Shown: positions 2,777-57,569, counted from the stretch's first letter. The stretch: 64,000 nucleotides of DNA from Camelus ferus (GCF_009834535.1 NC_045712.1:43400001-43464000); one strand, 5' to 3'. The notes: generated by a model from the letters alone, not told the origin. Numbers and translations are program-made.

Positions 2777-2947
2777 GACAGACGGAAGATGTGCAGATGC
2801 TCCTGCACTTTGGGGCAGACCCCACCCTGCTGGATCGACAGTCCCGGTCCCCTGTGGATGTCCTGAAGAGGAACAAGAACTTCAAAGCCATCGAGAAAAT
2901 CAACAGTCACTTGGAAAAGCTGGCTGCGTGTTCTAAGGACCTCTCAG
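2777..2947 (+). CDS. TRANK1: TRANK1 exon (171 nt, phase 1-1), ankyrin repeat QTEDVQMLLHFGADPTLLD...KDLS
   Basis: ctctag|GACAG acceptor, TCAG|gtacag donor; inside ORF 2713..2967. Confidence 0.95.
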
Positions 2948-8900: not shown

Positions 8901-11900
8901 TGCATCCTCCTGGAACTGTTATTTGCATATATCATCCTTTTTCAAAAAATGCCACAGATGTTTCTTTCTTCTGTTGACTAAGGCTCTACTTCCTTAAGGT
9001 ATTTCCAGCCTTCCCAAGGAGCTCACAGGGCCGGTGCTGGCCCTGAGGTTCACGTGTGGTTGAGTAGCATGCCCGAAGTAACTAAGTACTTGTTTATGGT
9101 TCCCCAGGACCTGAAAATACTGACCAGTAACTTGGGGTATTTCTGTACCGATGTGTTGGGTTGTTGTTGGGAGCAGAAACCACATAAACCATCTTTGGAG
9201 TGTGATGTATTCTTGTTTTTGAAAGAAATTCCTCCTGACCTGGTCTATGACATTAACCGCGACTGTGCCAACACCTTCATCAAGTCTTTACTGGAAAAAC
9301 AGAGATGGCCCGAGGTGCTTCTGCTGCTGACCCGCAAAGCGAGCGGGGAGCTGCCGCTCGGGGACTGCCTCATCAAAGACTGCGACCTCTCGGACCTCGA
9401 CCTCTGTGTGGTCTTCCCCCACCTCTGCACCTGGGACCAGCGGAGGACCCAGCTCCTGGGCCACCTGATAGACCGCGGAGGTGAGTCCTTGAAGCTGAGT
9501 GAGCATCCGGGGGTCATCCCAGGGGAGTCCAGGCCATCACAGGACTTCCTCTTGATTTCCCTTTCTCCTTTAAATTCTGCCTCTTCTCTTCCTCCCTCAT
9601 ATCTTCTCATTTTGAAGCAGTGATGGGGTCAGTGCATTTTTGTGAATTCTCCCCTTGCTCTCTTGTGTAAGGAACCTCAGGCCTGTGGGAGGGGCCTTGG
9701 CCCCGGTTGTAGCCACAGTGGTCATTTCCTCCTGACCTCCAGCTGGACTTTTCCCTGCACTCAGTGTGCCATGTGGGTGCTTGTCAAACTGTGTGGCCTT
9801 CTTTTCTGATCCACGGGTTGGGATTTGAGATGTTTGTTTTTAAAGAAACGGCCAGATAAATGGGTGGGTGGAAACATCTGCCGCTTTAATCAGCACAGTC
9901 ACACTTGGCTGGATGTGTGTCTGGAGTGTGCACACATCTTGCTGGACTGGGTTTTATTTTAAAACTAATTTGGAAACACCAACCTCCTCCCACCCCCTCT
10001 CCCCAGCGCCCCCCAGTAAGGCCACTACTAACTGTGTGATCTTGGGCACGCTACTTATGCCTCTGTCTCCTCATTTATAAAATGGGGGTGAAAATAGTCC
10101 CCCTTAGGTCTGTTTTGAATATTCAATGAGCTCAGAGATGCAGGCTCTTGGAAGAGTGCCTTGGCTGTGTGCTTTTCTGCCTGCCTTGCCGTTTAAGGGG
10201 AAATGACCTTCAGAAGGAGTGATGACACCTTGGTCCCAACCCTCAAAGTGCCATACAAAGCCCATGGGTTTCAGGACGTAGATGGTATGCCTCCATGTTA
10301 TTTCTGCTTTAATTCTTCAATCCATTCCTTGTGTGGAGCATTGCTACCTTTGCCCATAAATGAAGGCGCTTATGGCATTCCTGTTTTGTTCCCGATGAAG
10401 CAGGCACTTATCGAGTACCTCCCTGGGGTCAGGTGCTAGGACCCAAGGATGGAGAGTGAATACATGGCTGCGGGTGGCATTGTGTGCAGGAGGGTACAGG
10501 GCTGCAGGGGATGGAGGTCAGGGAGCCTGCACTGCAGAGGGGAGGCGTGGACTGAGCTAAAAGGAAGGTGGTGTGGGGGTGGAGGAGTGTCAGGGAAGAT
10601 GACAAATGAGGGCAGAAGGGCATTTTCAGGAAGGAGCTTCCTAGAAGCAAAGGATGTGTGAAACACGCCTACGTCTTGATCACTGTGTGTTGGGGACGGT
10701 GCTGGGAAAACCCTGGGAGTTCAGTTGTTTGTGCCAGTCCCTACTCCAGGGCAGTGCTGATGGCGGTCCTGTGGCGGGATGGGAGGGGGAGCTGGAGAGA
10801 TGGGAGAGGAGGCGAGGCCCATGGACAGGGCACTTGGAGGAGCTGGGCTTTCCCTCTGAGGGTGCATGGGAAGCCCTTGCCTCCCAGAAAGGATGCTGGC
10901 GGGAGGGCTTGGAAGTAGGGTCAGCATCAGCTCTTGCTTTGGAATAAAGAGCAGAAGCGGTCCCAGCCCCGCAGGGGTGCAGGGCTGTGCCTCCGCTCAG
11001 GGATGCAGCTGACTGTGCCCTTCTCTCTGCCTCTGCCAGCCTCGCCTGAGGGTCTCCAGGGCAGCCAGGAGAGGCCGATCACCACGTGCCTGAAGCATGA
11101 GGACTTCGAACTGGCCTTCCTCCTCTTGACCAAGGGTGCAGATCCTCGAGGCATTTCTCTCACCGAAGGCGACACTCCTTTGCATGCTGCACTCCACATC
11201 TTTCTAGAGATCAAAGGTAGGCCTTTATTTTGTAAGCAGTCTTTTTCTTGAGGAGGAAACTGGATATCAGAACTGATGCGATGCTCTTTGGTCTTTCCTA
11301 CTGGGAAAACCAACTGTCTGGAAAAGGCTTGTTTCTTGGCCAGGTGCGTATCTCCTGGCCCCTCACACGTAGCTTGATGGGAAGGAGTGAGCATCACAGT
11401 GAATGGTCAGGGTGGGTTCACTGAGAAGGATTCTTAAGTTTCGAAGTCCATAGCTGCAAATATTTTCCATTTACTTACACCATTTTCAAGGGACTTGACA
11501 TAAAGGATCTTACTGGAATATTATAAGGTGATTTCAGGGTTTCTCAGCCTTGGCACTGTTGACAGTTGGGAGGGATAATTCTTTGTGTGTGTGTGGTGGG
11601 TGACCTGTGCATTGTAGGATATTTAGCAATCTCTGGCCTCCACCCACTATATGCCAGTAGTACCTCCTAAATTGTGACCCTCAAAAATGTCCCTAGACAT
11701 GGCCACATGTCTGTTGGGGACCAAATCGCCCCCAGTTGAGAATCACTGGGTTATCAAATCCTTGGGGAAGTTCCGTGTTCTCGGGACCCCTGGCTGGCAT
11801 CTCTCTCAAATCCACGGGGTCTGTGCTCCCCAGAAGAGCTGTTGAGCACTCATCAGGGTTTTTGTGTCTTTCAGCTGACGTCGGTTTTAACTTCCTCAAT

Positions 11901-13614
11901 CACCTGTTGAATCTGTTCTGGTCCAAGCCCAGCGAATTTCACTACCTCAACCCCAACAACCAGGACAGCAGCGGGAACACGCTGATGCACATCCTCTTCC
12001 AGAAGGGCATGCTGAAGCGCATGGGGAAGCTGATAGGTCTGCTGGTGAAGTTTGACATCAACTTCAACCTGAAGAACAAGGAAGGCAAGGACGTGCGGCA
12101 CCGCGTTAAGAAGAACGACGCGCTGCTCCTGGCCTGGAACAAAGCCCTGCTGGAGAGCAAGCGCAGGGGCCGCCAGGACACCGCCGCCCACGCGGGGAAG
12201 CCCCTGCGCTCCGCGGCCCCAGCTCACGCGTCCCAGATCAAGGGCTCCTCCAAGTTGCCACCCTGCGGCGGCGGTGCCCGAGCCCCGCCCGGAGGAGCCG
12301 TGGTCCCTGACAGCTGGGAGACCCTCCCAGATGCCCAGGCGATGAGGCCGGAGCCTGGGGTGTCCAGGCCCAGCTCACGGAGAGACTGCCTCGTGCAGGA
12401 CATCACGGCTTTGATTCGGCAGGTAGGAAATGGATCCATCCCTCTCAGAGGCCTGTCCCCAGGCTCCTGAGCCTCTGGAGGCGGGAGCTGGCCCTGAAGT
12501 GGAGAAGGAGCCTCAGGGCGCCCCGGGGGCGGGGGCCTCTGACAGCAGCGGGAACAACCCCGGTGACCTTGAGGCCGCGGAGGGATGCGTCCATGGGGGC
12601 CTCGGGGCCCGGCAGCCCGTGCCTGCTGGTCACAGGGGGACAGAGGGCAGTGACGACCAGGACGACCAGAGCCTGCCAGAGGTCGAGGCCTGCCTCCTGG
12701 ACTTCGAGAACATGACATGGGAGATCGAGTGCACTTCGGAGATGCTGAAGAAGCTATCCAGCAAGATCATGACCAAGGTCATGAAGAAGAAAATCATCCT
12801 CGCCATCCAGAATCTGGGCAATGGCGAGTGGACGCGGGGCCTGCGGAAGCGGCTGAGGAACCTGAAAGGGAGCATCCAGCTCTTCGAGGCTAAGCTGGAC
12901 AAAGGGGCCCGGATGCTGTGGGAGCTCGCCATCGACTTCTCCCCTCGGTGCAGCGAGAACCCCGAGAAGATCATCGCCGCAGAGCGCGGCGCGCACCCCT
13001 CGGAGAAGGTGGGGCGGGTCTACACGGAAATCATCCGGATCTGGGACGTCGTGTTGGATCACGACAGGCTGCCGGACTCCATCCAGGCCATCTGCAGCGC
13101 CTACAACCGGGGCCTGTCCTGTGTCCTGCGCAAGAAGCTAAAGGGTATCAACAAGGGCCAGGTGTCGGCCAACAAGAAGATCCAGAAGTGGATTCCCCGC
13201 TGCTACGTGGAGGACACGGAGGCCGAACAGAGCGGGGCGCGCGCGGAGCCCGAGTACTTCCCGCCGGCCAGCGCCGTGGAGACGGAGTATAACATCATGA
13301 AGTTCCACAGCTTCAGCACCAGCATGGCCTCCAACATCCTCAACGACACGACGGCCACCGTGGAGTACCCCTTCCGCGTGGGCGAGCTCGAGTACGCCGT
13401 GATCGACCTCAACCCCCGGCCGCTGGAGCCCATCATCCTGATCGGGCGGAGCGGCACCGGCAAGACCACTTGCTGCCTGTACCGGCTGTGGAAGAAATTC
13501 CACGTTTACTGGGAGAAGGCGGGGCAGGCGGGGAGCCCGCTCCTGGCCAGACAGATCTGGCTGAAGAGAAGGTTGGAAGTAGAGCCCCGAAAGGAGGGTC
13601 CAGGCGGGGGAGAA

Positions 13615-13647
<33 letters not shown>

Positions 13648-16600
13648 GAGGAGGAAGGTTCCCTGGAGGTGGAAACACTGGACAGCGGAGAAGAGGAGCA
13701 GGAGACTGAAGCCTGTGCCCGCGGGGCCAGCGAGGAGCCTGGGGGCCCATGGGCAAGGGGCGGAGGGATGCACCCCAGAACAGCCCCACCAGCTGGAGCA
13801 TTTACATCAGATCTTCGTGACCAAGAACCACGTCCTGTGCCAGGAGGTGCAGAGGAATTTCGTGGAGCTTTCCAAGTCTACCAAGGCCACCAGCCACTAC
13901 AAACCCTTGGAACCCAATGTCCACAGACTCCAGGACCTGAAGGATGAGAACTTTCCACTGTTTGTCACCTCCAAGCAGCTGCTCCTCTTGCTTGATGCTT
14001 CTCTGCCCAAGCCATTTTTCCTGAGAAATGAAGATGGCAGCTTGAAGAGAACCATCATAGGATGGTCCACGCAGGAAGAGCTGACCATCCCCAACTGGCA
14101 GGAGGAGGAGGAGGAGGCCGAGGCAGAGGAGGGCTACGGCGAAGAGGAGAAGGCTGCAGAAACGCGGCCGTGTGACAGCGACCCCCGGGTGTTTGTGACA
14201 TATGAGGTGTTCGCCAATGAAATATGGCCAAAAATGATTCAAAGGGAAAACCTCCTACAACCCCGCACTGATTTGGAAGGAAATAAAATCTTTTCTGAAG
14301 GGATCTTTTGAGGCTCTCAGCTCCCCCAAAGGGAGACTGACAGAAGAAGCATATAAGAAATTAGGGCGGAAGCGGTCCCCCAATTTCAAGGAAGACCGGA
14401 GCGAGATCTACGTCCTCTTCTGCCTGTATCAGCAGATCAGGTCTCAGAAAGGTTACTTTGATGAAGAGGATGTCCTCTACAACCTGTCCCGGAGACTGTC
14501 GAAGGTCAAGGTGCTCCCGTGGTCCATCCACGAGCTCTATGGTGATGAGATCCAGGACTTCACCCAAGCCGAGCTGGCGCTGCTGATGAAATGCATCAAT
14601 GACCCCAACGCCATGTTCCTCACCGGGGACACGGCCCAGACCATCATGAAGGGCGTGGCCTTCCGCTTCAGCGACCTGCGCTCCCTGTTCCACTACGCCA
14701 GCAAGAGCACCGGTGACAAGCAGTGTGCCGTGCGGAAGCCTAAGAAGATCCACCAGCTGTACCAGAACTACAGGTCCCACTCGGGTATGTCGGTGCCTTG
14801 GGCTTGCCTGTGAGGGAGGTGCTTGGGCACTGACCTTGGGCTGCTTTTGAAGCTGTGGTCCAGCTTTTGTCAGGCCCTTGACCCAGCTGGAATAAGGACA
14901 CTGTTTTGGAGTTTGTTAGTGGTTACCCTCATGAAAAAGAGATCTTTTGATTTCTGCCAGTACTTACTCTTAGGCTGATCATTTAGGCTGTGGTTAAATG
15001 GAAGTGGACCTTTAAGTTATTACATCTTAAGGTGTTGGCCATGGTATGAAAACATCTCAGGGGAACGTTTAAACTGCTTGAGAACTTTTGTTACAGCACT
15101 TTGGAACTACGTGCTTATGCAAGATAAAGTAATTCACCAATTACAAATCATTAATCCTGAAAGCAGCTTTTCTCCCAAGGAGAAGCAAGAAAAGGCAGGT
15201 GGGAGGTGGTGGGAGATGACACACACTCAGGCGCTTTTGATTTGCATCTCACTTGTGCCTCTCCTCTGTGCCAAGCACGATGCTGAGCACATATAGTACC
15301 TGCTTTTAATCCTCACAACAATCCTACAAAGTAGGCGTCATTCCCATTTTATGAAGACACAGAGGGTTGAAATAGTGGGACACTAATGCCAGAATATTTC
15401 CTTTATCATTTATAGAATGCTCACTGTGTTCTTATGCTGCTATCGTACTATCTTACTGTATTATCAGACTTCTCCAGTGACTCTTTGTGCTTTTGATTGG
15501 AATTTCATTCAATTTCTCAGTCTTTGGGAAGAATTCACATCTTTACATTATAGGGATTTCTGAACCTCGGCATATTTCTCTATTTAGATTTTTTTTTTTT
15601 ACTGCCTTTTGTGATACTTTATAATTTTCCCCAGACATTTTCCCCAGCAGTTAGATTTGTCCTGGGGACCTTATACTTTTTGTTATAATCATAGCTATAC
15701 CTTTTTTCTCTTTTTATATTTTCCAGTCACGTCTTACTGGTAGAGAGGAAAGCTGCTGGTTCTTGTATGTTGATCTGGTGTCTCACAATCTTGCTGAACA
15801 CTCCTCCTACTTCTGCCTCTTAGAGGTTGGCATGTTGGTGCAGATAAGGGCAGTTTTCATCTTCTTTCCTATACTTGTCATTTCTTTTTCCTGTCATATT
15901 CCTGTGTTATTCCTGAAGTTAATGGGAATATTTCTAACATTTCAGTATTTATGCCTGATGTAGGTTTTTGTTGTTGTTGTTTTGGGGGGTGTGGGTAATT
16001 AGGTTTATTTAGTTATTAATTTTTAATGGAGGTAACTGGGGATTGAACCCAGGACCTCGTGTATGCGAAGCAAGCACTCTACCACTGAGCTATACCCTCC
16101 CCCTGGTGTCTCTTTTTCTAGATACATTTGGTAGGCTATAGTCTGATGGTGAGAGAAAACACACACATCCCAAACACACATATACGCATACACATACACA
16201 CTCGCCCACGTACATACATCCAGTGTAAAATTAGATTAAAATTCTGATTTGTGTAGCCAAGGATTCAGAAAAACGGTCAGAGAAGCCAGGTGGCCTCCCA
16301 GAGTGCAGCATGTACCACACAGCTCAGCCCGGTTTCCAGGGCTCTCAAAGTCTCCTGATGTTGCTTGTCCATCACAGGGTCTGGTTGCATCTGAGCAACT
16401 CAGCTTCGTGGCCTTCTGTGGTCTTCCACTTGTGTTGTGTGGGAAGAACTGGCCCAAGGAACTTGATGCTCTTAATAGGAATTTTTAGTCGCCGCCCTTC
16501 TTTCATCCGTTCAGGAAGCATTTATAGAACTCCTATCCCCCAACACTGTTGGAGGGGTCGGGTGACCAAAACCCACATTTCTCTGTCCTCAGGACATGGC

Positions 16601-19600
16601 TCTGGAAGGCACCCCCTTTTTCGTTGTTGGATCCTGTGGAGAGGACCTAGCACGAGCAGTTGAATGAGCCCCTTATTCTGATGTGTACCCCTGGTTCAGC
16701 ACCACTGGTATAGGGACAGCAGCCTTTATGATCAGCAAAGTAGAGAATGGCGAAGGGAATTGTTCCTGCAAACTGAATTTTTTTTTTAAATTGCTGTGCT
16801 AAGCAACCCACACAGATGATTACTGCGTAAACCCCATCTCCCACCTCCTCTCTTAGTTGTTGTTTTTGGTGGCTGGGAGGTAATTAGGTTTATTTATTTA
16901 TTTTTAGAGGAGGTACTGGGCATTGAACCCAGGACTTCATGCATGCTAAGCATGCACTCTGCCACTTAAGCTATGCCCTCCCTCCACCTCTTCTCTTAGG
17001 ATGGAGGGAAGGCTGTGTGATTTCTGTGTATAGAACCAGAAAAAGCCCCAATAAGATGTGCTAGAAAACACATAAAATGTTAAAAAAAAAAATTCAAGCT
17101 CCCTGTAAGGCTGCTAACAACTAACATTTTGTTTTATTTCCTCCTGATCTTTTTACTTATACATATATGCATTTATCACACTCATGTATGTATTTATTGA
17201 TTATGTAGTGAATATATGTTTAGTGAATATTTCCCCATTTTTTATTCTTTAAATTGAGATTCACACAGCATAACATTCATCTGTCTAAAATGTGCAACTT
17301 GGTGGGGTTTTTTAAATAATATATTCATGAGGTTGTGCAATCATAACCACTATCTAACTCCAGAACAGTTTTGTCACCCCAAAAAGAAACCCTAAAACCA
17401 TTAGCAGTCTCTCCTCATTCCCCTAACCCTGTGAACTACCAGTCTACTTTCTAGATTTGCCTATTCTGGACATTTCTGATAAATGGAATCATGCAACATG
17501 TGACCTTTTATACCCATCTTCTTTCATTTCACATCATGTTTCCAAGATTCTTCCGTATTATAGCCTATGTTAGTACTTCAAGTTTTTTGTGGCTGAATCA
17601 TCCTTTATTCTTTGAGTATGTTTATATAAAATAATTTATGTAGTTCCCTAGAAGGTCCTTTAAGTGGATTCCAGTTTTTCACCACAGTGAACACTTATGT
17701 GCCTTTTTCTGATTCTTTCATTAATGTAAATCTCTGAACCACAATATCAGCTGAGTTAGATTAGATTCAACAGTTTCAACTTGTGCTTTCAATTTCTTTA
17801 AACTGTGTACTTTTGATAATAGTAGCCCTGGATGATGAAATTTCCCTTTACTCCTTGATAACTGCAATGGGGACACATGTGCCCATTTCATAGTATTCTA
17901 TCTGGTGTCGAGCAAACGGCACAGGGCCCCTGAGAATAGTGGGAGACCCAGGATGGTCTGTGTTCAGACCAGCTTCAAATCCTGACACTTGGAGGTGTTT
18001 CCTAACTTCTCGGACCTCAGCGTCTCTGTTTGCAAAAGTGGGGTTGTCTGGTCTGTCTCATCGGGCTGTTGGGAGGATTAAAAAGGGATGATTTTTAGGA
18101 AGGTGCCTGTTGTACAGTCAGCATCACTGTCGATGTTACTTCAGTGCTTAGACAAAAATGGGACCCAGGGAGAAAGCTCAATGGAAAGTTCTTTATCCAG
18201 TGTGACAGTTTTTCTTAGTATAGTCCTGTCTCGGCTGGGAATACACCTGGCAGAAAGGGTGATGTCCCAGCTAACATCCAGCACTGCTCTTACCAGGTAA
18301 CGTCTCTGGTGCGCTAAATACCAATGACAGGGGATGGAATAACTTGCTTTTTTACCGTCTACATTAGCCGCCTGTATTGGCATTCTAACAGCTCTAATTG
18401 TTTAGATTACATTTCCGCCTTGACTCTTCTTCATGAGGTAATTTTCTCTAACACGAATATAGGTCAGGAATGAGATTGTACAAAACCTTCGTGCTACAGC
18501 AAACATGCCTCTGTCTTCATCTACTGCACCCAGAATAGTACAGCTCGGCGCCAAAGGGATCATCTAATAGGATCTGGAAATGGGCTTGCAGCTAGCTGTA
18601 TGTACCATCAGGACCAATGCTGCCTCTCAGGAAAAACAAAACAAAACCAAACCCAAAATAAGAAAACAAAATACAAGAAACCCAGCCATGCTGTCATGTT
18701 GTATGTTACATGTTTTTTGTTTTATCCCAGGAATCCTCAATCTGGCATCTGGAGTGATAGATTTACTTAAGTTCTATTTCCCGGAATCTTTTGATCGCCT
18801 TACAAGGGATTCTGGCCTCTTCGATGGTCCCAAACCAATTGTCCTGGAGTCTTGTAGTGTGAGTGACTTGGCAATATTGCTTCGAGGCAACAAAAGGAAA
18901 ACCCAGCCCATCGAATTTGGAGCCCATCAGGTGAGTTTCTTGAGATTGTATGTTTTTAAATAAAAGGCGAAGTGGGGAGGGTACAGCTCAAGTGGTAGAG
19001 TGCATGCTTAGCGGGCACAAGGTCCTGGGTTCAGTTTCCCAGTACCTTCTTTAAAAATAAATAAACCTAGTTACCTCCCCACCTCCACTAAAATAAAATA
19101 AATAATTTTTTTAAATAAAATAAAATAAAAGGCAGTTTGTGATTGAAAAAAGTTTTGAGAAGCTGAGTCATTCCACCAGGTAGAACTCAATAGCCCCTGT
19201 TCCAAAATGAGGAAGTTTCCGGGATGGGTGAGTGACTAATTGTTATTCACAGTCCCACCAGCCTGGCTGACCAAGTCCACACCGGTACTTCTCTTCAAAG
19301 ACATTCTCTGCCTCCCATAGAAATCGACTCAGTGTTACTAGATTTCTCTTTCTACAATTTGATGTTTTTTCTCTTCTATTCCCTCGCTTTTTTTTCCCCC
19401 CTCAGGTGATCCTTGTAGCCAATGAAATGGCAAAGGAGAAAATTCCAGAAGAGCTGGGGTTAGCACTTGTGCTAACAGTTTATGAAGCAAAGGGCTTAGA
19501 ATTTGACGATGTCCTCCTTTACAACTTTTTCACTGATTCCGAGGTATGTCATTCTGAGTTCTTTTCCCACAGTGCATGTATCTGTATGAGCTACCCTTCC

Positions 19601-21608
19601 ACTCCTGGGAAGAGAATTTGGAGCTGAGTCGAAAAGAGTTTGTCACAGGTGCCTGTTTCTGTTTTGGACCATTGTCCATTTGGTGTGGGGCTCTTTGTGT
19701 GTTTGGATGTGGGTTTTGACAAGGGCTGTGGGTTGCTCCGCAGTGTCTCATGACCTGGTTCTTCCCATGCCCTGCCCTTCCCTGCTCTCTTGTATTCATC
19801 TCTTCTCAAGGCCTGGTACCCAAGTGCCAGCTTCCGGTTTTCCCTACGACTGTTATTCTTGACTCCCGAGGATGCTCGAGTTGGAGCAAGCTCTAATGAG
19901 AGCCTTACAAATGAAGGCAAGGTTAGCAGTGTCCACCTGGCGAGGACAAAACTGGGCAAGGTCATCCCTAGAGAGAGTGAACTCCGGGAAGACAAATGAG
20001 CCTTGGTTCCTGCCCCCGGGATCAGGTAACGCAGGAGACCAGAACAGCCGCCCCGCCTGAGCTTCCTTCCGGCATGGCTTCGCCACCACTGCTTGCAGGC
20101 AATGGCAGCCGGAGAGTCCCTGGACTGACAACTCAGTGACCTCTGTGCCAGCCTGTTGTCTCAACTTGGCTCCTGAGTGCTGGTGACAGTCTTTCTCCTC
20201 CAGCTCAGTACATTACGGGGAGAGCCACCAACTCAAGGCCATTGTCCTCAGTCTCCTAGCCACTGGTGTCTCTTCACCACCGTCTTTGATGGGGCTCAGG
20301 CTGGCTGCTGACTGTGGGGTGGGGTCTTCTTTGGGGACCTAGTTGGCTGTGCCCGGGTCCTCGTTGCAGATGTCCCACTGCACATGGCGCGTGCTCGAAG
20401 GGGCTATTTTCATACCCAAGTCAGGAGCACTCTTAGCTTTGACTCCCTAAAAATCTGCCCCAGAACTAACCCTTTGAATGGAGTCCATATTTTTCTTTTG
20501 TCTAGTCTTTTAAAAAATGTCACGTTTGCCTTGATAATACCTACAACTAATATTGCTACGGGCACTTTACAGTTTATAACGTGCTTTTTTAATACATTGT
20601 CTCAGTTCATCCTCCACTGACCCTCTGAGGTTGTATTTTTATTACCCCCATTCTACAGATAAGGCCAGGGGTCATGGACATTAAGTAAATTGCCCATAGT
20701 CATAATGTAGGTGCCAGAGCCTGGAGATGAAGTCAGATGCTCTGAGTTCTAAATCTCATGATCTTTCCCCTAAAATTCCTTCCTTTTAAAGCCCTGCATG
20801 CAAATCGGCTGCCAGAACCTTCCACAATGAATATATCATGGCCATCCCTTAAGTGCATTCCTTTTCTATTGGCTTTTGCTAATAAAATGAGATACATTCT
20901 CATTAATCCTGGAACCATTTTTAATCTCTGAGGACTAACTTTTTTTTCTCATAATACATCCATTGGTCATGGTTGGACCGAGGCTCTCCTAAAAGAGGAA
21001 GGGGTAAGACTTTGTTGTTCCTGTCTTTTATGAAGTGCCAGTTGTATGCTTGTGCTCGTTAGAAGCTCCAGGAGCTCTGGGCTGATACATTGGTAACTTG
21101 TGGTCAACTCTGTGTGTGAAAGAAAAATCTGGTTATTCTCTCTAACCTTGACCCTAGCACGGCAGAGTCCTGGATGCCTTGACCCTAAGCTCCCACCAAT
21201 GGCTCAGTGAGTTGCATGAAATTAAAACAATGACCAATTGGATCTTTTGTAACATCCCCTTCATCCTATGTTTATAATCTCGATATGATGCTTCCCAGTT
21301 GCCATGGGAGTAGAGTCATGCATTCCCCAGCGCAAAGCACACATTCAGTTTATCATTTACAACCCCAAGACCAAAAGGCATCAGTGCAAATGGAAGTAGA
21401 TGCTTTAGTCCAAGGAGAGGAGAGACAGAGGTCACTGAAGTCCCCAGTTGTCCTGGTCTGGCTGCTCACATGGGGTTTCTTTCAAGGTGAAGGCTGCTGA
21501 ACAGTTTGCTATTTGAGGCAGATGGACTGAGGCAAGCACCTCTCTCCATCCCTGGACTCGTCTTCCACCCATGTGTCTAGCAGGCTCACTCTGTGTGTGT
21601 GTGTGTGT

Positions 21609-21640
<32 letters not shown>

Positions 21641-27600: not shown

Positions 27601-30600
27601 TCAAGCCACCTGCCATCTTAGCAAGCCCATGCCGTCTTCTTACGGGAAATGTTCTCTCCGTTAGTCCTCTTGAAATACCGACACCAGCTTAAAGAGCCCC
27701 ACAGGCAGCACCCCCACCCCTCACACGGTCTCAGGTGGGGCACCAGGCATTGTGTGTCTCCTGTGATGGAGCAGTAATGATGTCTTCACCTGCAGGTCAC
27801 AAAAACCCCACAGAGTGCAGGAGGGTATAGCTCAGTGGTAGAGCACATGCTTAGCATGCACGAGGCCTGGGGTTCAATCTCCTGTACCTCCATTAAAAAT
27901 GAATAAATAAATAAAAACCTGATTACCTCCCACCCCCCAAAAAAATAAATTTAAAAAAAAAGTGAAATTGTTGAAAAAAAAAAAAAGCTAAAAAAAAAAA
28001 AAAAAAACCCATGGAAAGGGGTATGTTGTTGTTTTTCATCCAACAACAAGAAGTCTGGTCTCAGGGTTGGTTCTGCAGCTGAATCAAGTCTCACTCCATG
28101 TCTTCCCTGTGCTGTTTGCAACTTACCAGAGCTTTCCCCTCCTGGCTGCATAATGGCTGCAGCAGTGCCAGGCACCTCACTCCCCTCAGCAGCATCCCAA
28201 GCAGGAATGAAGTGCAGGCACACATGTTCCTCTTGTGGCCTTTAAAAAAAAAAAAAAATCATGAGGTCCCCAGTGGACATCTTACCTTTCCCTGGTCAGC
28301 ACTAGGTCACCTGTCCCTCCCTGACTGGAACGGATCTAGGAGAGCAGAGCAGTCCCCTCTGGTAGTTTCAGCCCTTCATGGGGGGGCAGGTTCTGCCATC
28401 AGGCAGCAAAGAGAGGACAGGGTCCTGGGGGTAAGTAACCAGCAGAGTGCCACACTGGCCAGGACCGCACAGAAATGCACCCTTCCCGAGACTGACTCTC
28501 CGGGGTGCCTGGGACTGCTCCATGTCTGCAGCTGTAAGCGGTGCTTCCTGAGAGAACAGCTGGAGCTGAGCTTTGGACCAATCCTTGCTTTCCTGTCCCT
28601 GCCTCCACGCTCACATTAGACTTATGTTTTTTCAGACTTAGGTCCGACTTCTCACATGTTACAGGAAAAGTGTCTGCAGTTTCTCTTGCCACTTCTGAAC
28701 AGGTGTTTTAAGACGGTGATTTCTCAAAAGGACTCGTCCTGCTGTTTTAATGATCTACTTTTCCTTGGAATAGGGAGGGTACTGGGAAGTGATGGACGCA
28801 GTGACACAGCAAGTCAGAACTTAAGGGAAGCGACTGCTTGAGGTTCTCCCATGTGACAAGCCTGGGGAAGAGGAATTCTCAGTGTTTTCTTATTCCAAGT
28901 TCTTAGGAAAGTTTTGTCTGCTGTGGCAGGGAAAGTGCTTTTAAGTCTGCAGCAAGTCACTCACATCTGAGAGTTAGGAACTTTTGCTGCATAACAACCC
29001 CAAAAACAAGTCACTTACGTAGCTCACAGTTCTGTGGGTAGGCAAAGCTGAGTCCATCTAAGTAGTTCTTCTAGGCTGGGTGACTTAAGCTGTCCTCAGC
29101 TACCCGTCAGCGAGCAGATCTGTTTCTGGGGGTTGGCTGGCTCTTGGCTCAGGGGATGGGGGGTGAATGGGGTTCCTGGTGTGTTCACATGATGCCCGAG
29201 CAGGTTGCATGAGGGCACATGAGGCCTCGGCCTGGCCTGGGAGCTGGCCCAGTGTCACTTCTTTCTGCTGCATCATGTTGGCCAAAGCAGATCACAGCTC
29301 AGTTCAGGAGGGAGGGGAAACAGGCCACACTCTCCACAGAGAAATGGGAGAAGCTGCACAGTTACTCTGTAAGGGGGTGTGGATGGATGCAGAGCCAGGT
29401 GACGGACTGGGGCAACCCCTGTAATCAATTGTGAGGGAGAGGAAAACAGAATTTGCACTGTTGTGTGTTTGTTTGTGTCTGGAAAGTGTTTCCATGAACA
29501 TGTCACAGTGGTGGAATTTGACCGAGCTCCCACAATGTACTCACTGCCCACCCTTGTTGCAGTTGGAAAGAAATACCAAACACTTGGCTATTGTTATAAC
29601 ACCAAGAATTTTTTTTTTTTTTTAGAAAGGGGGTTGGGGGCACAATATGGGCAGCAGGTATGGGCATGAAATAGGAAAACTGTATAGTCTTTCCTTTTCT
29701 CCCTCTCAGACGGGACTGGGGTGGGACCCAGTGCTCCATCCATGCAGACACGGAATGCATGCTTTCCCTCTCATGCTTCTGCCACCTCCATGACCTAGCT
29801 GGAAACAGAAACCTTTGGCTTATTCCAGGTTGCAGCCAAGTGTTACCAAAAAGGAGGTGCACTGGAGAAGGAGAAACTGGCTTTGGCTCACAACACCGCC
29901 CTGAACATGAAATCCAAGAAAGTCAGCCCCAAGTAAGAGTCTTGGGTGGAGGTTATTTCAGGTTTGCTCTCATGAGAGCTGTGGGTTATACATATACAGG
30001 TGGCACGTCAACCTCCCATGGAAGCTCTGCTTTGTTTCCTCCTCCCAGGGAAAAGCAGGTGGAGTATTTGGAACTGGCTAAGACCTATCTGGAGTGCAAG
30101 GAGCCGAAGCTGTCCCTTAAGTGTCTGAGCTACGCCAAGGAGTTCCAGCTCTGTGCCCAGCTGTGCGAGAGGCTGGGAAAGGTATGCCTGTGGCTGCTCC
30201 TGGGAGAACTGGGCTTCCCTGGGCAGACAGAAGGGTGGCCCCCAGCCTCCGCCTGGGTCAAGACGGGGAGGTTGGCCCTGTTGACTCAGTGGGTGGCCCC
30301 TCTTTCTCCACTCACTCCATTTGTGTGTAGATGGATGCATGGACTCTGTGTGTATGCCCATGTCTGTGCCAATGTTTGGGTTTTTTTTTAATTTTTAATT
30401 GACGTGTGTTGGTTTCCAATGCTAGTTTCAGGTGTACAGCAAAGTGATTCAGTTATACATATACATACATACACATATTTCTCAGATTCTTTTCCATTAT
30501 AGGTTATTACAAGAAATTGAATATAGTTCTCTGTTTTGTACAGTAGGTCCTTGTTTTTTATCTATTTTATTTATAGTAATGTGTGTCTATTAATCCTCAG

Positions 30601-33600
30601 CTGCTAATTTATCCCTCCCCGTCCCTCTCCCCTTTGCTAACCGTAGTTTGTTTTCTATGTCCGTGAATCTGTTTTTGGTTTATAAACAGAATTTGTATCT
30701 TTTTTTTTTTTTTTAGATTCCACATATAAGTGATATCATATGATATTTGTGTTTCTCTGTCTGACTTGCTTCATGTGTCAATATTTGAGACCCAATATTA
30801 ACTACAGGGAGGCTGAATGTTCACATCAAAGGGAAGATGGGTTTTAGATATCCCTGCCTTCTCTTTCTCTGTGTTCAGTCTGGAGTCAGCCTGGGGGGAC
30901 AGTCTAGCATTTACATGGTGGTTTCTCTGTGTTCCCAGCAGTTACCCTAGGTCCGCACCGACCAATCTGACAGCCACTAACCATGTGTGGCTACTTAATT
31001 AAACATTTTTAAGTTAATTAAAATGTAATAAAGTTAAAAAATTCAGTACCTCCGTCTCATGAGCCGCGTCTCAAGTGCTCTATGGAATACAACATTTCCA
31101 TCATGGTGGACATGCTGGTGGACGGAGCTGCTGGTCCAGAGCACAGCGACTCACAGTGCAGTCAGCAGGCTGGCTCCGGCCACAAACAGTTATTACCTGC
31201 AGCGAGATTAACACTCAGGAGGAAAGTAAGCCGTTCATTGCTGTGACATCCCAGTGGTGACAGTTTTCTTAGTGATTTGTTTTTCTTCTTCTTTTTTTTA
31301 ATTGAGATATAATTGATGTATAACATTATATTGGTTTTAACTGTGCAACATAATGATTCAATATATGCATCTATTGCAAAATGATCATGGCAGTAAGCTT
31401 AGTTGATGACTATCACCACCCATAGTTATATTTAAGATCACTTTCCTTTATATGCAGAATCTAAAAAATAAAACAAACAAGCAAATATAACAAAACTGAA
31501 ACAGACTCACAGGTACAGAGAACAAACTGTGGTTACCAGAGGAGAGTGGGAGGGGGTCGGGGCAAAATAGATGAAGGGGATTAAGAAGTACAAACTACTA
31601 AATATAAACTAAGTAAGTTACAAGCTGTAATGTACAGCACAGGGAATACAGCCAATATTTTATAATAACTTTGATGGTGTGTAATCTATAAAAAAATATC
31701 AAATTACTATGTTGTACACCTGAAACTAATATAGTATCGCAAGGGAACTATACGTCAATAAAGAATAATAAAATTAAAATAAATAAAATTTTAAAAAGAT
31801 CTACACTGTTAGTAACTTTCAGATATACAATACAGTATTATTAACTATAGTCACCATGCTGTATGGAAAGCCGTTCATTTTCAAGATTTTAATTAAAAAC
31901 AATTTTTTACTGAAATATAGTTGATACACAGTAATATTATATGTTACAGATGTACAATATGGTGAGTCACAATCTTTAAAGGTTGTACTCCATTTTTAGT
32001 TATTATAAAATATTGGCTGTATTCCCCATGCTGTACAATATATCCTTGTAGCTTATTTTATACCTGATAGTTTGTACCTCTTCATCCTCCACCTCTATCT
32101 TGCCCCTCCCCCTTCCCTCTCCCCAGTGGTAGCCACTAACTAGCTGTTCTCTGTATCTGTGAGTCTACTTTTTTGTTATATTCNNNNNNNNNNNNNNNNN
32201 NNNNNNNNNNNNNNNNNNNNNNNNNNNNNNNNNNNNNNNNNNNNNNNNNNNNNNNNNNNNNNNNNNNNNNNNNNNNNNNNNNNNNNNNNNNNNNNNNNNN
32301 NNNNNNNNNNNNNNNNNNNNNNNNNNNNNNNNNNNNNNNNNNNNNNNNNNNNNNNNNNNNNNNNNNNNNNNNNNNNNNNNNNNNNNNNNNNNNNNNNNNN
32401 NNNNNNNNNNNNNNNNNNNNNNNNNNNNNNNNNTCCGTGTCTTGGCAATTGTGAATAATGGGAAGCAGTTCATTTTTACTGTATCAGTGGTTGTGGGTTG
32501 GACAGGCAGCTTCTGGCCCTCACCACAGGGTGTGTGAGGGCTGTGCTCTAGGGTGCCCAGCTGCAGCTGCTGCATTTCCCCCTGGGTCAGGCTTTAGGAC
32601 CGTCCAGTAGGGAGAGAGGAGTAACTCCTGGACCCTCACAGCACCCTGGGCATTGGGCTCCAGGTCAGTGTTAGAGGAGCTAAGGCCCTCCCCATGCTGC
32701 CTGCCCCACCCCATGTTTACTGAGAGATGTGACTAATCAGGATATGAGAGGAGGGGGTGGAATGGAGATTTCAGTGTGGGTGGATGTTTGGGTCCTAAGA
32801 GTCCCAGAACTAGAGTGGTTTCCAAACTCCACATTCCTTCGTCCTCCACCCTCCAATCTCCAAGGCACCCCCTTGGGCCCTAAGCAACAGGGGACAGACC
32901 TGAATTTGCCACTGTCCCTTGTCCCGTTTGCCTGCTAGTGCCCATCCTGACTGAGCCAGAGACCACTTTGTCGTCTGCTCACCTTGCCTCCCACCGCCTG
33001 CTGAGCTCTGCCTCTGAGAGCAGAGTAGGGCCCAGGAGGCTGTGCATCTGGCCCCCATGCCCGTCTCCATGACCTTGGTGCCTTCAGAATGTGGAGGCAG
33101 CCCTGCTCCCGGAGACATAGCCTTCCCGCCTGCCTCCACTTCCCCAGGGTTGACTACTGGGGATAACTCCTTCTGTCTTTCACAACACATTCTAGCAGCT
33201 CTGAGCCCCCCTGGGGAAGAGTCTGGTCCCCTTCTCTGCTCAGACCCCTTCCTTGAAGAGTATTCAACTTTCGGCCGGCTTCAGACCTCTTGTGGTCATC
33301 TCACCAGTCTAACCAGCATGATTCAAACAGACCAGACTTTGCAAAATCCTTAGGCCAAACCGTCTGCCTGTTTCCAGCCCCCCAACAGGTGCTAACCCCC
33401 TAGGAGAAGTGTTTGTGAGGAGCCTAAGCTTTTTTCCAGGGGTTCCTCCACCTTGCCTGTTTGCTGCCTCTCCAAATAGCATCACGGTTTCCTGGAAACA
33501 TCTCAGGACTCTTCCTCCAGGTGGCAGGAGCCAAGTGACCTAAGCAGGGGGACTGCTTGGAGCCAGCCCTCTCCTCTCTTGGTCCAGTTGGGCACACACT

Positions 33601-36600
33601 CGCACCTGATAGGGCCTGTGTTCACACAGGGGTTTTCTTCTGCGTGGTCAGCACTGTCAAGGAGAGGAAAAGAGACATGGTGGTGAGATGTTCTGGTTAT
33701 GGGTTTGACTGACGTGGCAGGATGCAGCTGGTAGCTAGCTCCCTGGTCCGTGAGGTCTCTGGATGTAGAATAACCACACTCCAGTCTTTTTTGTATTTTG
33801 GCATTTTGTGTAGCTTGTCTCATTAAATAAAACCCAGCTAAGATTTATTAGAGGGCCTGGCCCAGGTACTTTGTTTTTGTTTCATTTTCATTCTGTTCTC
33901 TCTTTGGACCTCAGGTGCAGCCAGTTGACTTAGGAAATTCAATATTCAACATATAGGTAGACCCCCTAGCCTGTGCCAGGCATTGTGAGCACTGGTCCTC
34001 CATATCTGAGGTTCCTCTGTATCCTTGGTTCCACATCACGAGTTCAACCAACTGCAGATCATGTAGTGCTGTAGTATTTACTATTTTTTAAAAACCCACA
34101 TATAAGTGGACCCATGCAGCTCAAACCCGTGTTGTTCAAGGGTCAGCTGTAATCAAATCCATGTTTCTCCCCTGAAGTTTGTGTGTCTTGGGTTTTGTTG
34201 AAGACTTTCTTTACCTCAAGGTTGCAAAGATACTCTCCTACGTTCTTCTCCAGTAGCTTTCACATTTAGATCTTTAACTCATCTGGAGCTTACATTTGTG
34301 TATGGTGTGAGGTTGGGATTTCACTTAATTTTTTTCTTGTAAAGAATTAGTTTTCCTAATATTCCCTATGTTTTAGTGTTTTTCACTGGATTCTAACACA
34401 TAGCAGATACACAACCATCCTCTTTATTATTCATAGTATCAGTTTACTTTTAAGATTATGTTATGAATATTCTAAGAGTAAAATTTTACTCTGTCCTAGA
34501 TAAGAGATGCCGCCTATTTCTATAAGCGAAGCCAGTGCTACGAAGATGCTTTCAGGTGCTTTGAGCAGATTCAGGAATTTGATCTAGCCCTCAAAATGTA
34601 CTGCCAAGAGGAGCTATTTGAAGAAGCTGCTATGGCCGTGGAAAAGTAGGTGTTTTCTCCTCTTCCTCCCCCACCTGCCCCTACCCCACCCTCCTGTTGC
34701 TCCTTGGGGACAGCCTGCCTTGGGTGGTGGTACCCTATTCTTCTAAAGTGACTTGACCATGTCACTCTCCTTGCACTTGAGTGGTAGCCTTGGGGATAGG
34801 TCAGGAATTCCTTGAAAGCTTTGATACTGTCATGAGGAAAAGGGGCAGAAGAAGAAGATAAAGGGTGTGTATGTAACCCCACACATACCTGGCAAAAGAG
34901 AAAAGTCACAGGTTAGACAATAAAAGACTAATGTGTGTGCAAGCCCCCGTCTCCCTTTTCTCAATAACCACATATCAAATGGAACAGGGTTGTATACCCA
35001 AAACCAGTAGCATGCTGTTACGAAATTTAAGGAATTTTTTTTCCAAGGATAATTTTGCTCTGCATAATTTTTGCCCTACAGACTGACTTTCAAACTTAAC
35101 TGTCACTTGCTTAGATTCCAACTCTACTCTGCTTCATTAGTTAGACATACAAATGCCTTGTTCCTGTGAGAATAAAGAATTGTATCAGTGTAAAATGAAG
35201 CCTTTCTAAAGATGCTGGATAACTTTAGGTTCTATTTTGAGGTTCATATTGACATGTGGGCATTTCATAGTTGCTCTATGCTCTGTTTTGTCAATTACCG
35301 ATTGGGTGATAATGAGCTGACACTGGTGTTGCCTGTCATTGCAGGTATGAAGAAATGCTAAGGACCAAGACCTTTCCCATCTCCAAGCTCTCCTACTCAG
35401 CCAGTCAGTTTTACCTGGAAGCTGCAGCCAAGTACTTGAGTGCAAATAAGATAAAGGAGATGATGGCTGTGCTCTCGAAGCTGGACACAGAGGACCAGCT
35501 GGTGTTCCTCAAGTCTCGGAAGCGGCTGGCGGAAGCTGCAGACCTCCTGAACAGGGAAGGTCGAAGAGAAGAGGCTGCCCTCCTGATGAAGCAACACGGC
35601 TGCCTCTTAGAGGCGGCCAGGCTCACCGCCGACAAGGACTTCCAGGCCTCGTGTCTGCTGGCGGCCTGCCCGCCTCAACGTGGCCAGGGATTCGGATGTG
35701 GACCAGACCAAGGCCATCCTTAGAGAAGCCCTTGAGCTCTGCCATCAGACCAATCAGGCATCCGGCATCGCGGAGGCTCACTTCCTGCAGGGGGTGATCC
35801 TGAGAGACTTTCAGAAGCTCAAGGACGCCTTCCTGAGGTTTGACAAGCTCAACCACTCCGCAGGAGCGGTGGAGGCCCTCTCCGAAGCCGCCAGCCAGTG
35901 TGAGGCTGACTCTGACAGTGTCCTGGCCCTGGCTCCAGGGGGCTTGGAAGTCCTCCTCAATCTGGTCAGGGCCCTCAAAAGCGTGACCAACAACGCAGAG
36001 AAGGAAATGGTCAAGTCTTGCTTTGAGTTTTTTGGGATTTCCCAGGTGGATGCCAAGTATTGCCAGATAGCTCAGAACGACCCTGGACCCATATTAAGAA
36101 TAATTTTCGACCTGGATGTGAACTTGAGAGAGAAGAAAGTGAAAGAGCATTTCTTGATTATGACGGACCAGGTGAAATTAGCCATCAACAAACACCTTTT
36201 GAGCAGGCTGTGTCAAATCACACGGAGCCTCCTGGGGAAGACCTACCCGAGCGTCTGCAGGAGGTTTATCGTCGGCTTAAAGTGTGAGGATGAAGACTGT
36301 GAAGATTTCCACAGGCCTCTGCGGCGCTGTGAGGCCAAGTGCGTGGTTCAGACAAAGATACACCTAGTGGCGATCAATGGACTGCTTTTGGAAGCCAAAA
36401 AAGTATTCCCCAAAAGCTTAGCTGAAGAACTTGAAGAAATCGATTGTATTTTGTCTACGGATAAGTATGGCTTTTGCAAATCCTTCCTGAATGTCCTCTT
36501 CCCCAAGCATTTCCATCAAAGAGTGTTGTCGGAAAACCCCATGGCGTGCAGAGAAATCCTCAAGCCGCATTACAAGTCCTTCCGCTCCTACAAGTCTGCC

Positions 36601-39018
36601 CTGAAAGAGTACGTCCATTTTGTGTTTCAAAACGAACGGCCCCGGAGCCGCCGGGAGTCCACGGACCTGTGGCTGAGCGCCATGCAGGCTTTTCTCCTCT
36701 CTGCCAGCTATCCTGAGGAGCTTGAAAAGCTGCTCCACCGGGAGGAGGACAATTACAACAGGGAACTCAAAGCCCTCCAGGCGGACAAGGAGGAAAGGGG
36801 AAGCGGGAGGGGCAGCAGGACGAAAGGAATAGAAGGGAAGTTCGGCATGCTGGCGCCCAACAAGGATGCTGAGAGTGCGGAGAAGACCCATTTGTGCTTC
36901 ATCCGGCTGCTGGAGGATTCCATCCAGCAGTTGTACGTGCACAGGAACCCCGAAGGCTACAAGAGGCGCTTTTTCCGTTTCATGAACGTCCTTGTTAAGA
37001 GGTGTAAGGAACCACTCATCCCTAGCATCGGGAACACAGTGGCCCTGCTGGAGTTACAGTTCGTCCACTGTGGGGCAGTCCTGGCCCGTCTTTGGAAGAA
37101 GGCCATCCTGTGCCTCCCCAAGAGCTACATCGCGCTCTTGCACTACTGGGAGTTCCTGTTCAGCAAGAGGGAGCCCGGGGACGTGTTCTCCATCATTCAG
37201 GAGTACAGACCGAAGGACGTGACCAGAGCCATTCAGGCTTTCCAGTTACACCTGTCCTACCTCGTCAAGGTGCTGTGCGGCTGGGAGAACGCGAACTTCA
37301 ACGTCCTGCTTGATGCCTTCAGTGAAATAGACTATGTGGTCTCCGGGGAGGCAGAGCGGACCCTGGTGCTGTGCCTGGTGATGCTGCTGAATGCGGAGGA
37401 GTTTCTGCAGCCGTCCTGCAAGCCTCTCCTGTCCCGCCACTTCCAGAAGATCGAGGCGAGCCTGCAGCTGATGAGCACGGACTGCCCGGACCAGGTCCCT
37501 GAGAGACTCCTCAGAGTGGTGAAGCGCGTGCTGATGGCGGGCAACGTCAAGTCCGTGGCAGAGGCGCTGCAGGACTTGCTCTTTGAGCGGGACGAAGAGT
37601 ACCTGATGGACTGCCACTGGCGATGGGACAGCGGGCACCCCAAAGGGGCCGGGGTGTGCGGCCTCTACCACGAGGAGGTCAGACTGAACCGCCTACTCTC
37701 CTGTGGACCCCGTGGGCTACTTTGCCGAGCCAGAGGGTGAGTTCGGTCAGGACGAGACGGAGGAGCTGGCCTCTGAGGACCGGGACCACCACCTCCTGGC
37801 CGCCATCCTCTCGCAGAAGCAGCGGAAGGCTTCCATCCAGCGGAAGCTGAGGAGGGCATGCCTGGTGGTGTCCTTGTGCATCAGCTGGAGGAGGAGGGCA
37901 GGGGCGCAGACCGAGCGCTTCCAGGAGGAGAGCGGGGAGCCGGTGGCCCGAAACTTCAAAAAGGCCGACGTGGACCGGACCCAGTGCGACCTGTGCGGAG
38001 TGAAGTTCATCCGAGGTCCCGAGAACTATTTCAGTCCAGGGAACTACTTTGGCCCGGATCAGGCAATTCAGGGAGCAGCTTCTGGGGCTGTGGCCCTTTC
38101 CGGGGCTGAGCTGAACGACGAGGAAGGTCGGGAGAGGAACAGTGAGTCTTACGAGGAGCACATCCGCCTGAAAGGCCACCACAAGCAGCAAGTGGCCTAC
38201 CAGAAGTACTGGAAATTTTTCCGCGAGAGGGTGGACCCGGCTATTGAGAAAGGCAAGCTGGTGGTGCAGGACATCGAGCAGAGCGTGTGGGTCCGCAGCC
38301 ACCTGGGCTCCAAAGAGCAGAGCCACATGCTGCAGGGGAAGGTCCAGGAGAACATCAAGAGGGTTTTGGACGCAGTGGAGGATCTCTACAGGCGGAAGGC
38401 CTGGGCTGACGGTGAGGGTCCTCGGAAGTCGGGCCCAGATGGTCTTAGAACCCAGGCTTTGAGAACGTAGGTCCCAGTCGAGTCCTTTGTGCTCCAGGTC
38501 TGACCTGGGGATGGTGGAATCTTGGCATTGGCAGAAATACAAGTGAGACAGTGGATTTCCAACTGCAGCAAAGCCCCAGTGGTTTGGACCACCCTCCCCC
38601 AATTAACAGGGTGTGATTGTCTTGGGCCAGGATAGTTTCCTCTGGAGTGACAGGCAAGAATTTACTCCCCAACTCTATGGAATGGATTTGGGGAGAGTGT
38701 TTTGAGTCTTGAGGAAACTCTTTAAGTTTCCCCCATTCATTTAGTCAGTGATCATTTCTTGAGTACCTACTATGTGCTGAGCCCTTGACTGAGATCTAGA
38801 GGTGTGGGTAGCTAGTCTCTTCCTTTTAGGAGGGCTCTTATGCCACACCCAGTGGGGGCCTTTAAGAATTCTTATGTAGGCTTTGAATCAGATTTCCTTA
38901 GAAAGTACCCCAACTAGAAAGCCCGCCAAATGGGTGGGCAAGTCTGCCCCAAACCTGTGGGTCCTTGCCTGCCAATAGAGAAAGAATTCTCAGTGGAAGT
39001 AGAGGGACAAAGTGAAAA

Positions 39019-57550: not shown

Positions 57551-57569
57551 TCAGGTGCTTTGCCTAGAG

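Follow-up and report, generated by a model that had tools for sequence, protein, structure and literature searches.

Large interferon-stimulated proteins in which a superfamily 1 (SF1) helicase is joined to an RNase-type domain, to zinc fingers or to both are exemplified by HELZ2, Schlafen 11/13 and ZNFX1, whose helicases belong to the Upf1-like subfamily and whose nuclease folds are of the RNB or Schlafen-core type. Cami1 (PDB 8phb/8phj), a ribosome-dependent RNase, combines a cyclic-oligoadenylate-binding CARF sensor and a RelE-fold effector in one polypeptide. The RelE/ParE superfamily itself (YoeB, YafQ, HigB, archaeal RelE, ParE2) consists of free-standing toxins of about 90 residues, each with an antitoxin gene. 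TRANK1, or lupus brain antigen 1, is one of the most replicated bipolar-disorder genes of genome-wide association studies, and was analysed here in a 64,000-nucleotide stretch of Camelus ferus DNA (GCF_009834535.1 NC_045712.1:43400001-43464000, hereafter the window). The protein, of about 2,970 residues, carries in order ankyrin repeats, a disordered linker, a RelE/ParE-fold domain, a bridge, a UvrD-like SF1 helicase, a TPR-like solenoid, a CCCH pattern, a long helical region and a split C2H2-like pattern.

The gene was located using tblastn with turtle TRANK1, obtained by a library-wide HMMER search, together with Camelus ferus and other mammalian proteins as queries. This gave 16 exons in order on the + strand, with borders set by splice refinement, and about 120 mammalian and sauropsid TRANK1 proteins gave the same exon picture. 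The window start falls inside the gene, which is covered from orthologue residue ~287 to its natural stop codon at 41281-41283. A Camelus ferus TRANK1 model from another assembly was 100% identical over 590 residues to the product of giant exon 2, and the window protein was 83-87% identical to other mammalian TRANK1 proteins. This full-length collinear similarity confirmed the gene assignment of a first-pass annotation made from the sequence alone, in which the feature ran from 11875, the start of giant exon 1, to 38411, the end of giant exon 2; its domain order of ankyrin, RelE-like, helicase, repeat region, CCCH and C2H2-like was also borne out by the tools used here. Camel TRANK1 shares 84.6-87.0% identity with that of other artiodactyls, a divergence that appears ordinary for a basal artiodactyl branch. 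Giant exon 1 is transcribed, with six RNA runs containing 0.80-0.94 of the sampled words of 11800-14900. The record differs from vertebrate TRANK1, as the same gene, by five single-base insertions and an intronic gap. It can be stated with high confidence that this is the camel TRANK1 orthologue with the domain order given above, intact and transcribed in the animal, and that the five +1 breaks are limited to this record.

The region preceding the helicase was modelled with AlphaFold2 using window positions 12700-13584 (295 residues, numbered from 12700) and an alignment with 53 homologues from many phyla. The model of the RelE-fold domain and the helicase start had a mean predicted local distance difference test score (pLDDT) of 88 and a predicted template-modelling score (pTM) of 0.85. 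Model residues 5-126 form β1, α1, α2, β2, β3, an insert of about 27 residues and β4, so that fold and element order are those of the RelE/ParE superfamily. The domain differs from the toxins in its insert between β3 and β4, in lacking a sequence-family match and in being internal to a spliced animal gene, with no bicistronic toxin-antitoxin arrangement.

Comparison of the model with the PDB using Foldseek placed YoeB, archaeal RelE, YafQ and a YoeB/ParE toxin at the top, with template-modelling (TM) scores by target of 0.62-0.74 and probabilities up to 0.99. Among the Swiss-Prot models, M. jannaschii RelE2 and RelE4 were matched at probabilities of 0.95 and 0.87, respectively. Foldseek matches to topoisomerase II, cyclodeaminase and EF-G had probabilities of 0.01-0.08 and were set aside. 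Using VIA-align 2, about 37 consecutive top rows all belonged to the RelE/ParE superfamily (HigB, the Cami1 RelE domain, aRelE, YafQ, YoeB, RelK, ParE2), with Z scores of 4.1-7.7 and a root-mean-square deviation (rmsd) of 2.2-3.7 Å over 80-112 aligned residues of chains 83-118 residues long, or of the C-terminal domain of Cami1; Z then fell sharply to about 3 for unrelated chains. The Cami1 domain was among the best structural matches (Z 6.7-7.0). A language-model search with the 133-residue domain alone returned ParE, ParE-like, YhaV, YoeB and YafQ clusters with scores of 0.86-0.90, the ParE-type clusters being the nearest neighbours.

A set of mostly polar and charged residues is strongly conserved among the 54 homologues: E8 and S81 are present in 54, R71, R113 and Y108 in 51, E63 and K/R65 in 48, and H121 in 47. 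Identity among 12 mammals is 88.4% for the RelE-fold domain, 84.7% for the whole protein and 63-70% for the flanking linkers. A conserved Arg stands at the start of β3 and a conserved His just after β4. VIA-align 2 aligned model residues 7-122 with YoeB 1-84 and model residues 6-126 with YafQ 3-92. Range arithmetic, as distinct from superposition, would place R71 on YoeB Arg65, and H121 on both YoeB His83 and YafQ His87; Glu46, Arg65, His83 and Tyr84 of YoeB and His87 of YafQ are catalytic.

The seven UvrD-type motif strings listed in the first-pass annotation were all located, in order, on the + strand. All seven are common to TRANK1 and the SF1A helicases UvrD, Rep and PcrA, from which TRANK1 is nevertheless very divergent, with large acidic inserts and with Tyr or Phe in place of the motif V His. 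The His to Tyr change that had been noted in motif V is present in camel, which thereby departs from the canonical SF1A form (T-h-H-x-AKGLE), and an aromatic residue at this position is typical of the whole family (Phe in 42 representatives, Tyr in 34 and His in 1). On the closest full-length orthologue (P0231), the Pfam profile UvrD_C scored 28.7 bits, above its cut-off of 25.6, whereas UvrD-helicase (20.0 against 23) and UvrD_C_2 (25.8 against 27.4) fell below theirs. A phmmer comparison of the helicase region with the PDB found no helicase at E 0.01. PADLOC gave weak GajB-type UvrD matches to the helicase, the best at E 4e-10; its defence models returned nothing for the RelE-fold module and nothing beyond these generic GajB-type matches. 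TRANK1 shares with Gabija this weak GajB similarity, but it has no GajA partner and is not a Gabija member.

The regions on either side of this core consist of repeats and putative metal sites. Pfam supports the ankyrin repeats of the first-pass annotation at residues 211-305 and 473-580 of P0231, the latter range reaching the first part of giant exon 1 at about 12000. Downstream, the CCCH pattern (C-x8-C-x4-C-x3-H; CRRFIVGLKCEDEDCEDFH) has a counterpart at the corresponding position in 10 of the 18 distant vertebrate and invertebrate homologues that were scanned, including those of turtle, shark, lamprey, crinoid, starfish, brittle star, amphioxus, abalone and nemertean. Of 26 family members examined, 25 contain both halves of the C2H2-like pattern, with ~10-90 residues of variable insert between them, compared with about 12 residues between the pairs in the U1/matrin-like reference (C-x2-C ... 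H-x5-H). Because the patterns are conserved across animal phyla, the sequences argue that both are real metal sites. CCCH fingers usually bind RNA, and RNA binding may be expected of the TRANK1 patterns.

The family extends far beyond the camel. TRANK1-like members were found in lamprey, shark, amphioxus, hemichordate, echinoderms, brachiopod, molluscs, annelids, nemertean, the cnidarian Nematostella and the sponge Oscarella. The module of RelE fold and helicase is conserved as far from mammals as the sponges and cnidarians. Petromyzon marinus has 22 'TRANK1-like' sequences from many scaffolds in one 90%-identity cluster (P0005), a lineage-specific expansion of the kind typical of immune gene families, and several paralogues occur in brachiopod and starfish. 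In a sponge metagenome contig (L005 1-15693), two TRANK1-like genes stand head to head, each broken into open reading frames (ORFs) of 965, 240 and 1223 residues; the pieces match in length between the two genes, and the pair looks like a recent inverted duplication in the sponge genome. Proteins of ~1000 residues labelled 'metagenome' were considered as prokaryotic homologues and rejected, being intron-split pieces of TRANK1-like genes of sponges and other animals.

Searches by shape reached further. Foldseek against the AlphaFold DB clusters matched the module (query ~2-280) to 'UvrD-like helicase ATP-binding domain' proteins of ~1000-1300 residues at E 1e-8 to 1e-16; their accessions look plant, fungal and protist, and two long proteins begin with the module at residue 1-2, all of these being leads from shape. 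In the ESM Atlas, bacterial UvrD-helicase clusters of 690-776 residues aligned with query 5-290 at TM scores by query of 0.42-0.49, likewise a lead. The RelE-fold plus P-loop module may, from these models, be far older than animals.

Two published lists connect the gene with interferon, in agreement with the interferon inducibility mentioned in the first-pass annotation: TRANK1 appears in an interferon-stimulated gene library (PMC6880163) and in an IFN-beta signature (PMC12231911). From these data it is proposed, as a possible rather than a probable explanation, that TRANK1, induced by interferon, serves as a single-chain effector of nucleic-acid surveillance that acts on RNA or ribosomes. The repeats and zinc fingers would pick an RNA or ribosome-bound target, and the helicase ATPase would translocate on it or remodel it. 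The RelE-fold domain, held rigidly before helicase domain 1A, would then act on RNA, either as an endonuclease of the YoeB/YafQ type or as a docking part on the translating ribosome. In its working such a protein would most resemble sensor-RelE fusions such as Cami1 on the one hand, and HELZ2 and the Schlafens, with their similar design logic, on the other. In TRANK1 the RelE fold is paired not with a CARF sensor, as in Cami1, but with an SF1 helicase that is accompanied by repeats and zinc fingers.

A number of observations weigh against this proposal. UvrD-type helicases classically act on DNA. The ORF pieces of the raw record matched no RelE/ParE family in Pfam (ParE_toxin, YoeB_toxin, YafQ_toxin, HigB) at E <= 1, and a profile of the 54 homologues found no RelE-family chain among the PDB sequences at E <= 10, the matches being P-loop noise. 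Because both searches were empty, the RelE-like domain is claimed here as a fold and not as membership of a sequence family. The first-pass annotation, which had placed a RelE-like nuclease-fold domain beside the helicase, was right about a RelE/ParE fold before motif I, but a sequence-family relationship did not emerge. Homology to RelE/ParE would accordingly rest on the modelled fold and on language-model features, and a shared fold does not prove activity, since the ParE toxins share this fold without being RNases. The region after the helicase gave sub-threshold TPR matches in Pfam (TPR_IFT122, E 0.0016, 18 bits against a cut-off of 75; TPR_7, E 1.5). The TPR of the first-pass annotation therefore survives as a helical solenoid, which is the best description by composition, but not as a certified TPR. 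For the CCCH and C2H2-like patterns there was no Pfam match, zf-CCCH at E <= 10 included; the two candidate fingers proposed earlier hold up in their conservation but not as profile matches, and the C2H2 one is split by its insert. In cattle endometrium, TRANK1 was grouped with interferon-independent genes (PMC8970397).

Many of the same observations can be accommodated if the RelE/ParE-fold domain is non-catalytic, serving as a regulatory or docking part for the helicase or in ParE-like protein binding. TRANK1 would then be a DNA-directed UvrD-like translocase or a scaffold, induced by interferon without cleaving RNA. This is quite conceivable, about as likely as the surveillance proposal and somewhat short of an even chance. 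It agrees with the UvrD/GajB type of the helicase similarity, with the ParE-type clusters at the head of the language-model neighbours and with the missing sequence-family match to active RelE RNases, and a fold by itself proves no activity. The modelling of the module as one rigid unit with helicase 1A (pTM 0.85) also fits an autoregulatory N-terminal domain. What a non-catalytic role accounts for less readily is the dense charged set (E8, E63, K/R65, R71, R113, H121), kept for >600 million years and beyond the usual need of a docking surface. R71 and H121 also appear to line up with residues that are catalytic in YoeB and YafQ, and CCCH fingers are as a rule binders of RNA.

A stronger form of the surveillance proposal, in which TRANK1 would do in animals what RelE-type abortive-infection effectors do in bacteria, appears unlikely. 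TRANK1 would in this case be a helicase-driven, interferon-induced endonuclease that cuts RNA after entering translating ribosomes or while scanning it; animals would have retained it from their beginnings, and fungi and plants might have it too. When 185,579 bacterial and archaeal species genomes were scanned with the alignment of RelE fold and P-loop, none of 600 pattern matches was confirmed. A scan with the helicase-core alignment gave 55 loci, of which the closest relatives found had 23-32% identity to the helicase core and the motif II DExQDFTQ in common. Some are UvrD-like helicases of 789 residues with an unassigned N-terminus of 140 residues, from Christensenellales (L009) and Clostridia. 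Others form a cyanobacterial family of ~1,370 residues with 28 members, all named 'hypothetical' (L045 8660-12796, L047 2235-6359, L055 8627-12796), in which a conserved N-terminal domain of ~300 residues (MYVYC...YPYWKR...RLVG...RG..Y) precedes the P-loop of a UvrD-like helicase with DExQDFTQ as motif II and weak C-terminal TPR matches. This N-terminal domain and TPR-like C-terminal region run parallel to the TRANK1 layout.

The N-termini of the cyanobacterial and Christensenellales helicases showed no relation to the TRANK1 RelE-fold domain by hhalign. A RelE-like pattern seen by eye at the cyanobacterial N-terminus was unsupported by hhalign, and a structure model of that N-terminus from three sequences had a pLDDT of 40, too poor to judge. 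The genes neighbouring the bacterial relatives are housekeeping in character: aldo-keto reductase, an RF-1-domain protein, citrate transporter, a xanthine-dehydrogenase-like protein, SAM hydroxide adenosyltransferase, aminotransferase, alanyl-tRNA synthetase and SRP54. This genomic context adds to the points against the surveillance proposal. The first-pass annotation had looked for its test in the closest prokaryotic homologues, and those found here turned out to carry no demonstrable RelE-like domain and to lie among housekeeping genes. For these two reasons the comparison leans against direct inheritance of a bacterial RelE-helicase defence module, within the limits of the searches made; the bacterial UvrD helicases that align by shape over the whole module hint the other way. 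As a separate observation, the helicase in the Christensenella locus L009 (9065-11434) directly follows a 323-residue protein (8071-9042) that has an RF-1 domain and no PCRF domain.

It is improbable that the domain is an unrelated, eukaryote-specific invention, a small α/β fold that converged on RelE by chance. Z scores of 6-7.7 do lie in the range where the tool warns of common arrangements, Foldseek gave weak E-values (0.07-1) when queried with all 295 residues of the model, and hhalign finds nothing between the RelE-fold domain and bacterial helicase N-terminal domains. However, convergence would have to explain why some 37 consecutive best matches come from one superfamily, with whole-chain coverage and an rmsd of 2.2-3.7 Å before the sharp drop, why the order of secondary structure elements is identical to that of RelE/ParE, and why an independent language-model search arrives at the same families.

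The reading frame of the two giant exons is interrupted in the record by five single extra bases, each causing a +1 shift. Because the extra bases shift the frame, motif I lies in frame 1, motif Ia in frame 2 and motifs II-IV in frame 3, all within giant exon 1; the motifs had been described as intact, which holds for the seven strings but overlooked the five breaks. With the five bases set aside and X placed at each site, 2,681 codons are open with no further stop. The Camelus ferus protein, which carries no low-quality flag, is uninterrupted at 4 of the 5 break sites, its model ending before the fifth. For a 101-base stretch centred on 35667, the presence of 7 sampled words was tested in public DNA and RNA runs from about ten studies. 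Exactly 4 of the 7 words (0.57) were present in 19 of the 20 runs in which the stretch was found, 3 of 7 in the remaining run and 7 of 7 in none, compared with a share of 0.56 expected if base 35667 is absent from the reads. Over 11800-14900, the fourteen best-matching runs each contained 0.96 of the words, against ~0.97 expected with three absent sites.

The five extra bases look like errors of the record and not gene decay in the animal, because all are single-base insertions, a pattern rare in natural decay, and because the words across 35667 are missing from the public runs, the Camelus ferus protein is continuous at four sites and divergence is ordinary. That TRANK1 is a decaying camel pseudogene with five real frameshifts, as the record with breaks in its two largest exons would suggest if taken as given, is very improbable and was rejected, since all five are +1 single-base insertions, no run contains the words across 35667, the Camelus ferus model is uninterrupted at four sites, the 2,681 codons are free of stops, divergence from other artiodactyls is ordinary and giant exon 1 is present in RNA runs.

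Table 1. Features of TRANK1 in the window, in order of position.
Feature	Position	Strand	Basis or remark
Upstream TRANK1 exons, ankyrin-encoding	..2947, 8321-8479, 9226-9480, 11040-11216 (span 2779..11216)	+	tblastn, splice refinement, Pfam Ank
Giant exon 1: last ankyrin-like repeats, low-conservation linker, RelE-fold domain, bridge, helicase motifs I-IV	11875-14784	+	
Extra base 1, G	12426	+	C. ferus protein continuous: ALIRQV/EMDPSL
RelE/ParE-fold domain, β-α-α-β-β-β, ~27-residue insert	12712-13077	+	AlphaFold2, Foldseek, VIA-align 2, language-model search
Motif I (Walker A) GRSGTGKT	13444-13467	+	String located; invariant in 54 homologues
Extra base 2, T	13750	+	C. ferus protein continuous: EEPGGP/GQGAEG
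Motif Ia QIFVTKN	13808-13828	+	String located; invariant alignment columns
Extra base 3, C	14240	+	C. ferus protein continuous: IWPKMI/KGKTSYNP
Motif II DEIQD	14544-14558	+	String located; invariant alignment columns
Motif III GDTAQ	14625-14639	+	String located; invariant alignment columns
Motif IV QNYRS	14763-14777	+	String located; invariant alignment columns
Small exons: helicase 2A/2B and start of helical solenoid	18731-18930, 19406-19543, 23061-23207, 24307-24463	+	tblastn, splice refinement
Motif V TVYEAKGLEF, Tyr in place of UvrD His	19475-19504	+	String located
Motif VI LYTAITRAR	24331-24357	+	String located
Further small exons, same helicase 2A/2B-to-solenoid stretch	27217-27305, 29829-29932, 30049-30181, 34500-34645	+	
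Assembly gap (N), intronic	32184-32433	.	Between exons 30049-30181 and 34500-34645
Giant exon 2: TPR-like helical solenoid, CCCH, long helical region, split C2H2-like finger	35345-38411	+	
Extra base 4, T	35667	+	C. ferus protein continuous: SCLLAA/ARLNVARD
CCCH pattern C-x8-C-x4-C-x3-H	36256-36312	+	Conserved at equivalent place in distant animals
Extra base 5, T	37702	+	Other mammals: RLNRLLS/VDPVG; beyond end of C. ferus model
Split C2H2-like pattern CDLC...F, acidic insert, H-x5-H	37985-38179	+	Conserved in family
Last two TRANK1 exons, stop 41281-41283	40007-40105, 41186-41283	+	

Orthologue residues run continuously across the exons flanking the N gap (P0231 1833 to 1830, P0315 1820 to 1817), and because both guide proteins continue without a jump, no coding exon is hidden in the gap. 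Its left flank resembles, by eye, the 3' end of an L1 element. The Camelus ferus TRANK1 model (P0315) is probably imperfect too: it has an extra segment matching the intron at 19787-20017 (67% identity with gaps), and it ends early, in another frame, at 37437-37499.

No second gene besides TRANK1 was identified in the window. A CpG-island-like stretch lies at 56000-58000 (GC 0.61), some 15 kb past the stop codon of TRANK1; it lacks any long ORF whose content could be recognised, and may mark the start of the next gene, as its promoter or first exon. Seven matches to a tRNA model, of 36-45 bits, lie in introns and flanks on both strands (8672-8743, 16028-16099, 16908-16980, 27821-27892, 39682-39753, 58507-58578 and 62695-62766) and are most likely copies of tRNA-derived short interspersed elements, not tRNA genes.

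The TRANK1 gene and its database labels of ankyrin, TPR and UvrD-like ATP-binding domain are already known, and a literature search returned no paper on its RelE-fold domain, zinc patterns or biochemical activity. AlphaFold DB is not known to contain whole-entry models of more than 2,700 residues, and this size limit may explain why the RelE-fold domain went unnoticed. For the assembly, the five +1 insertions may reflect a systematic insertion error in the record and are a warning to check the reads before any frameshift in this assembly is taken as a 'gene loss'. For the family, TRANK1 has been listed as an interferon-stimulated gene in mammals, birds and a crocodile, and no paper was found that states the role of the protein. 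A confidently modelled RelE/ParE fold, joined to an SF1 helicase from sponges to humans, offers a bench-testable RNA or ribosome hypothesis with named conserved residues. If this is true, a toxin-antitoxin-type fold would be added to the bacterial immune modules that have been reused in animal innate immunity.

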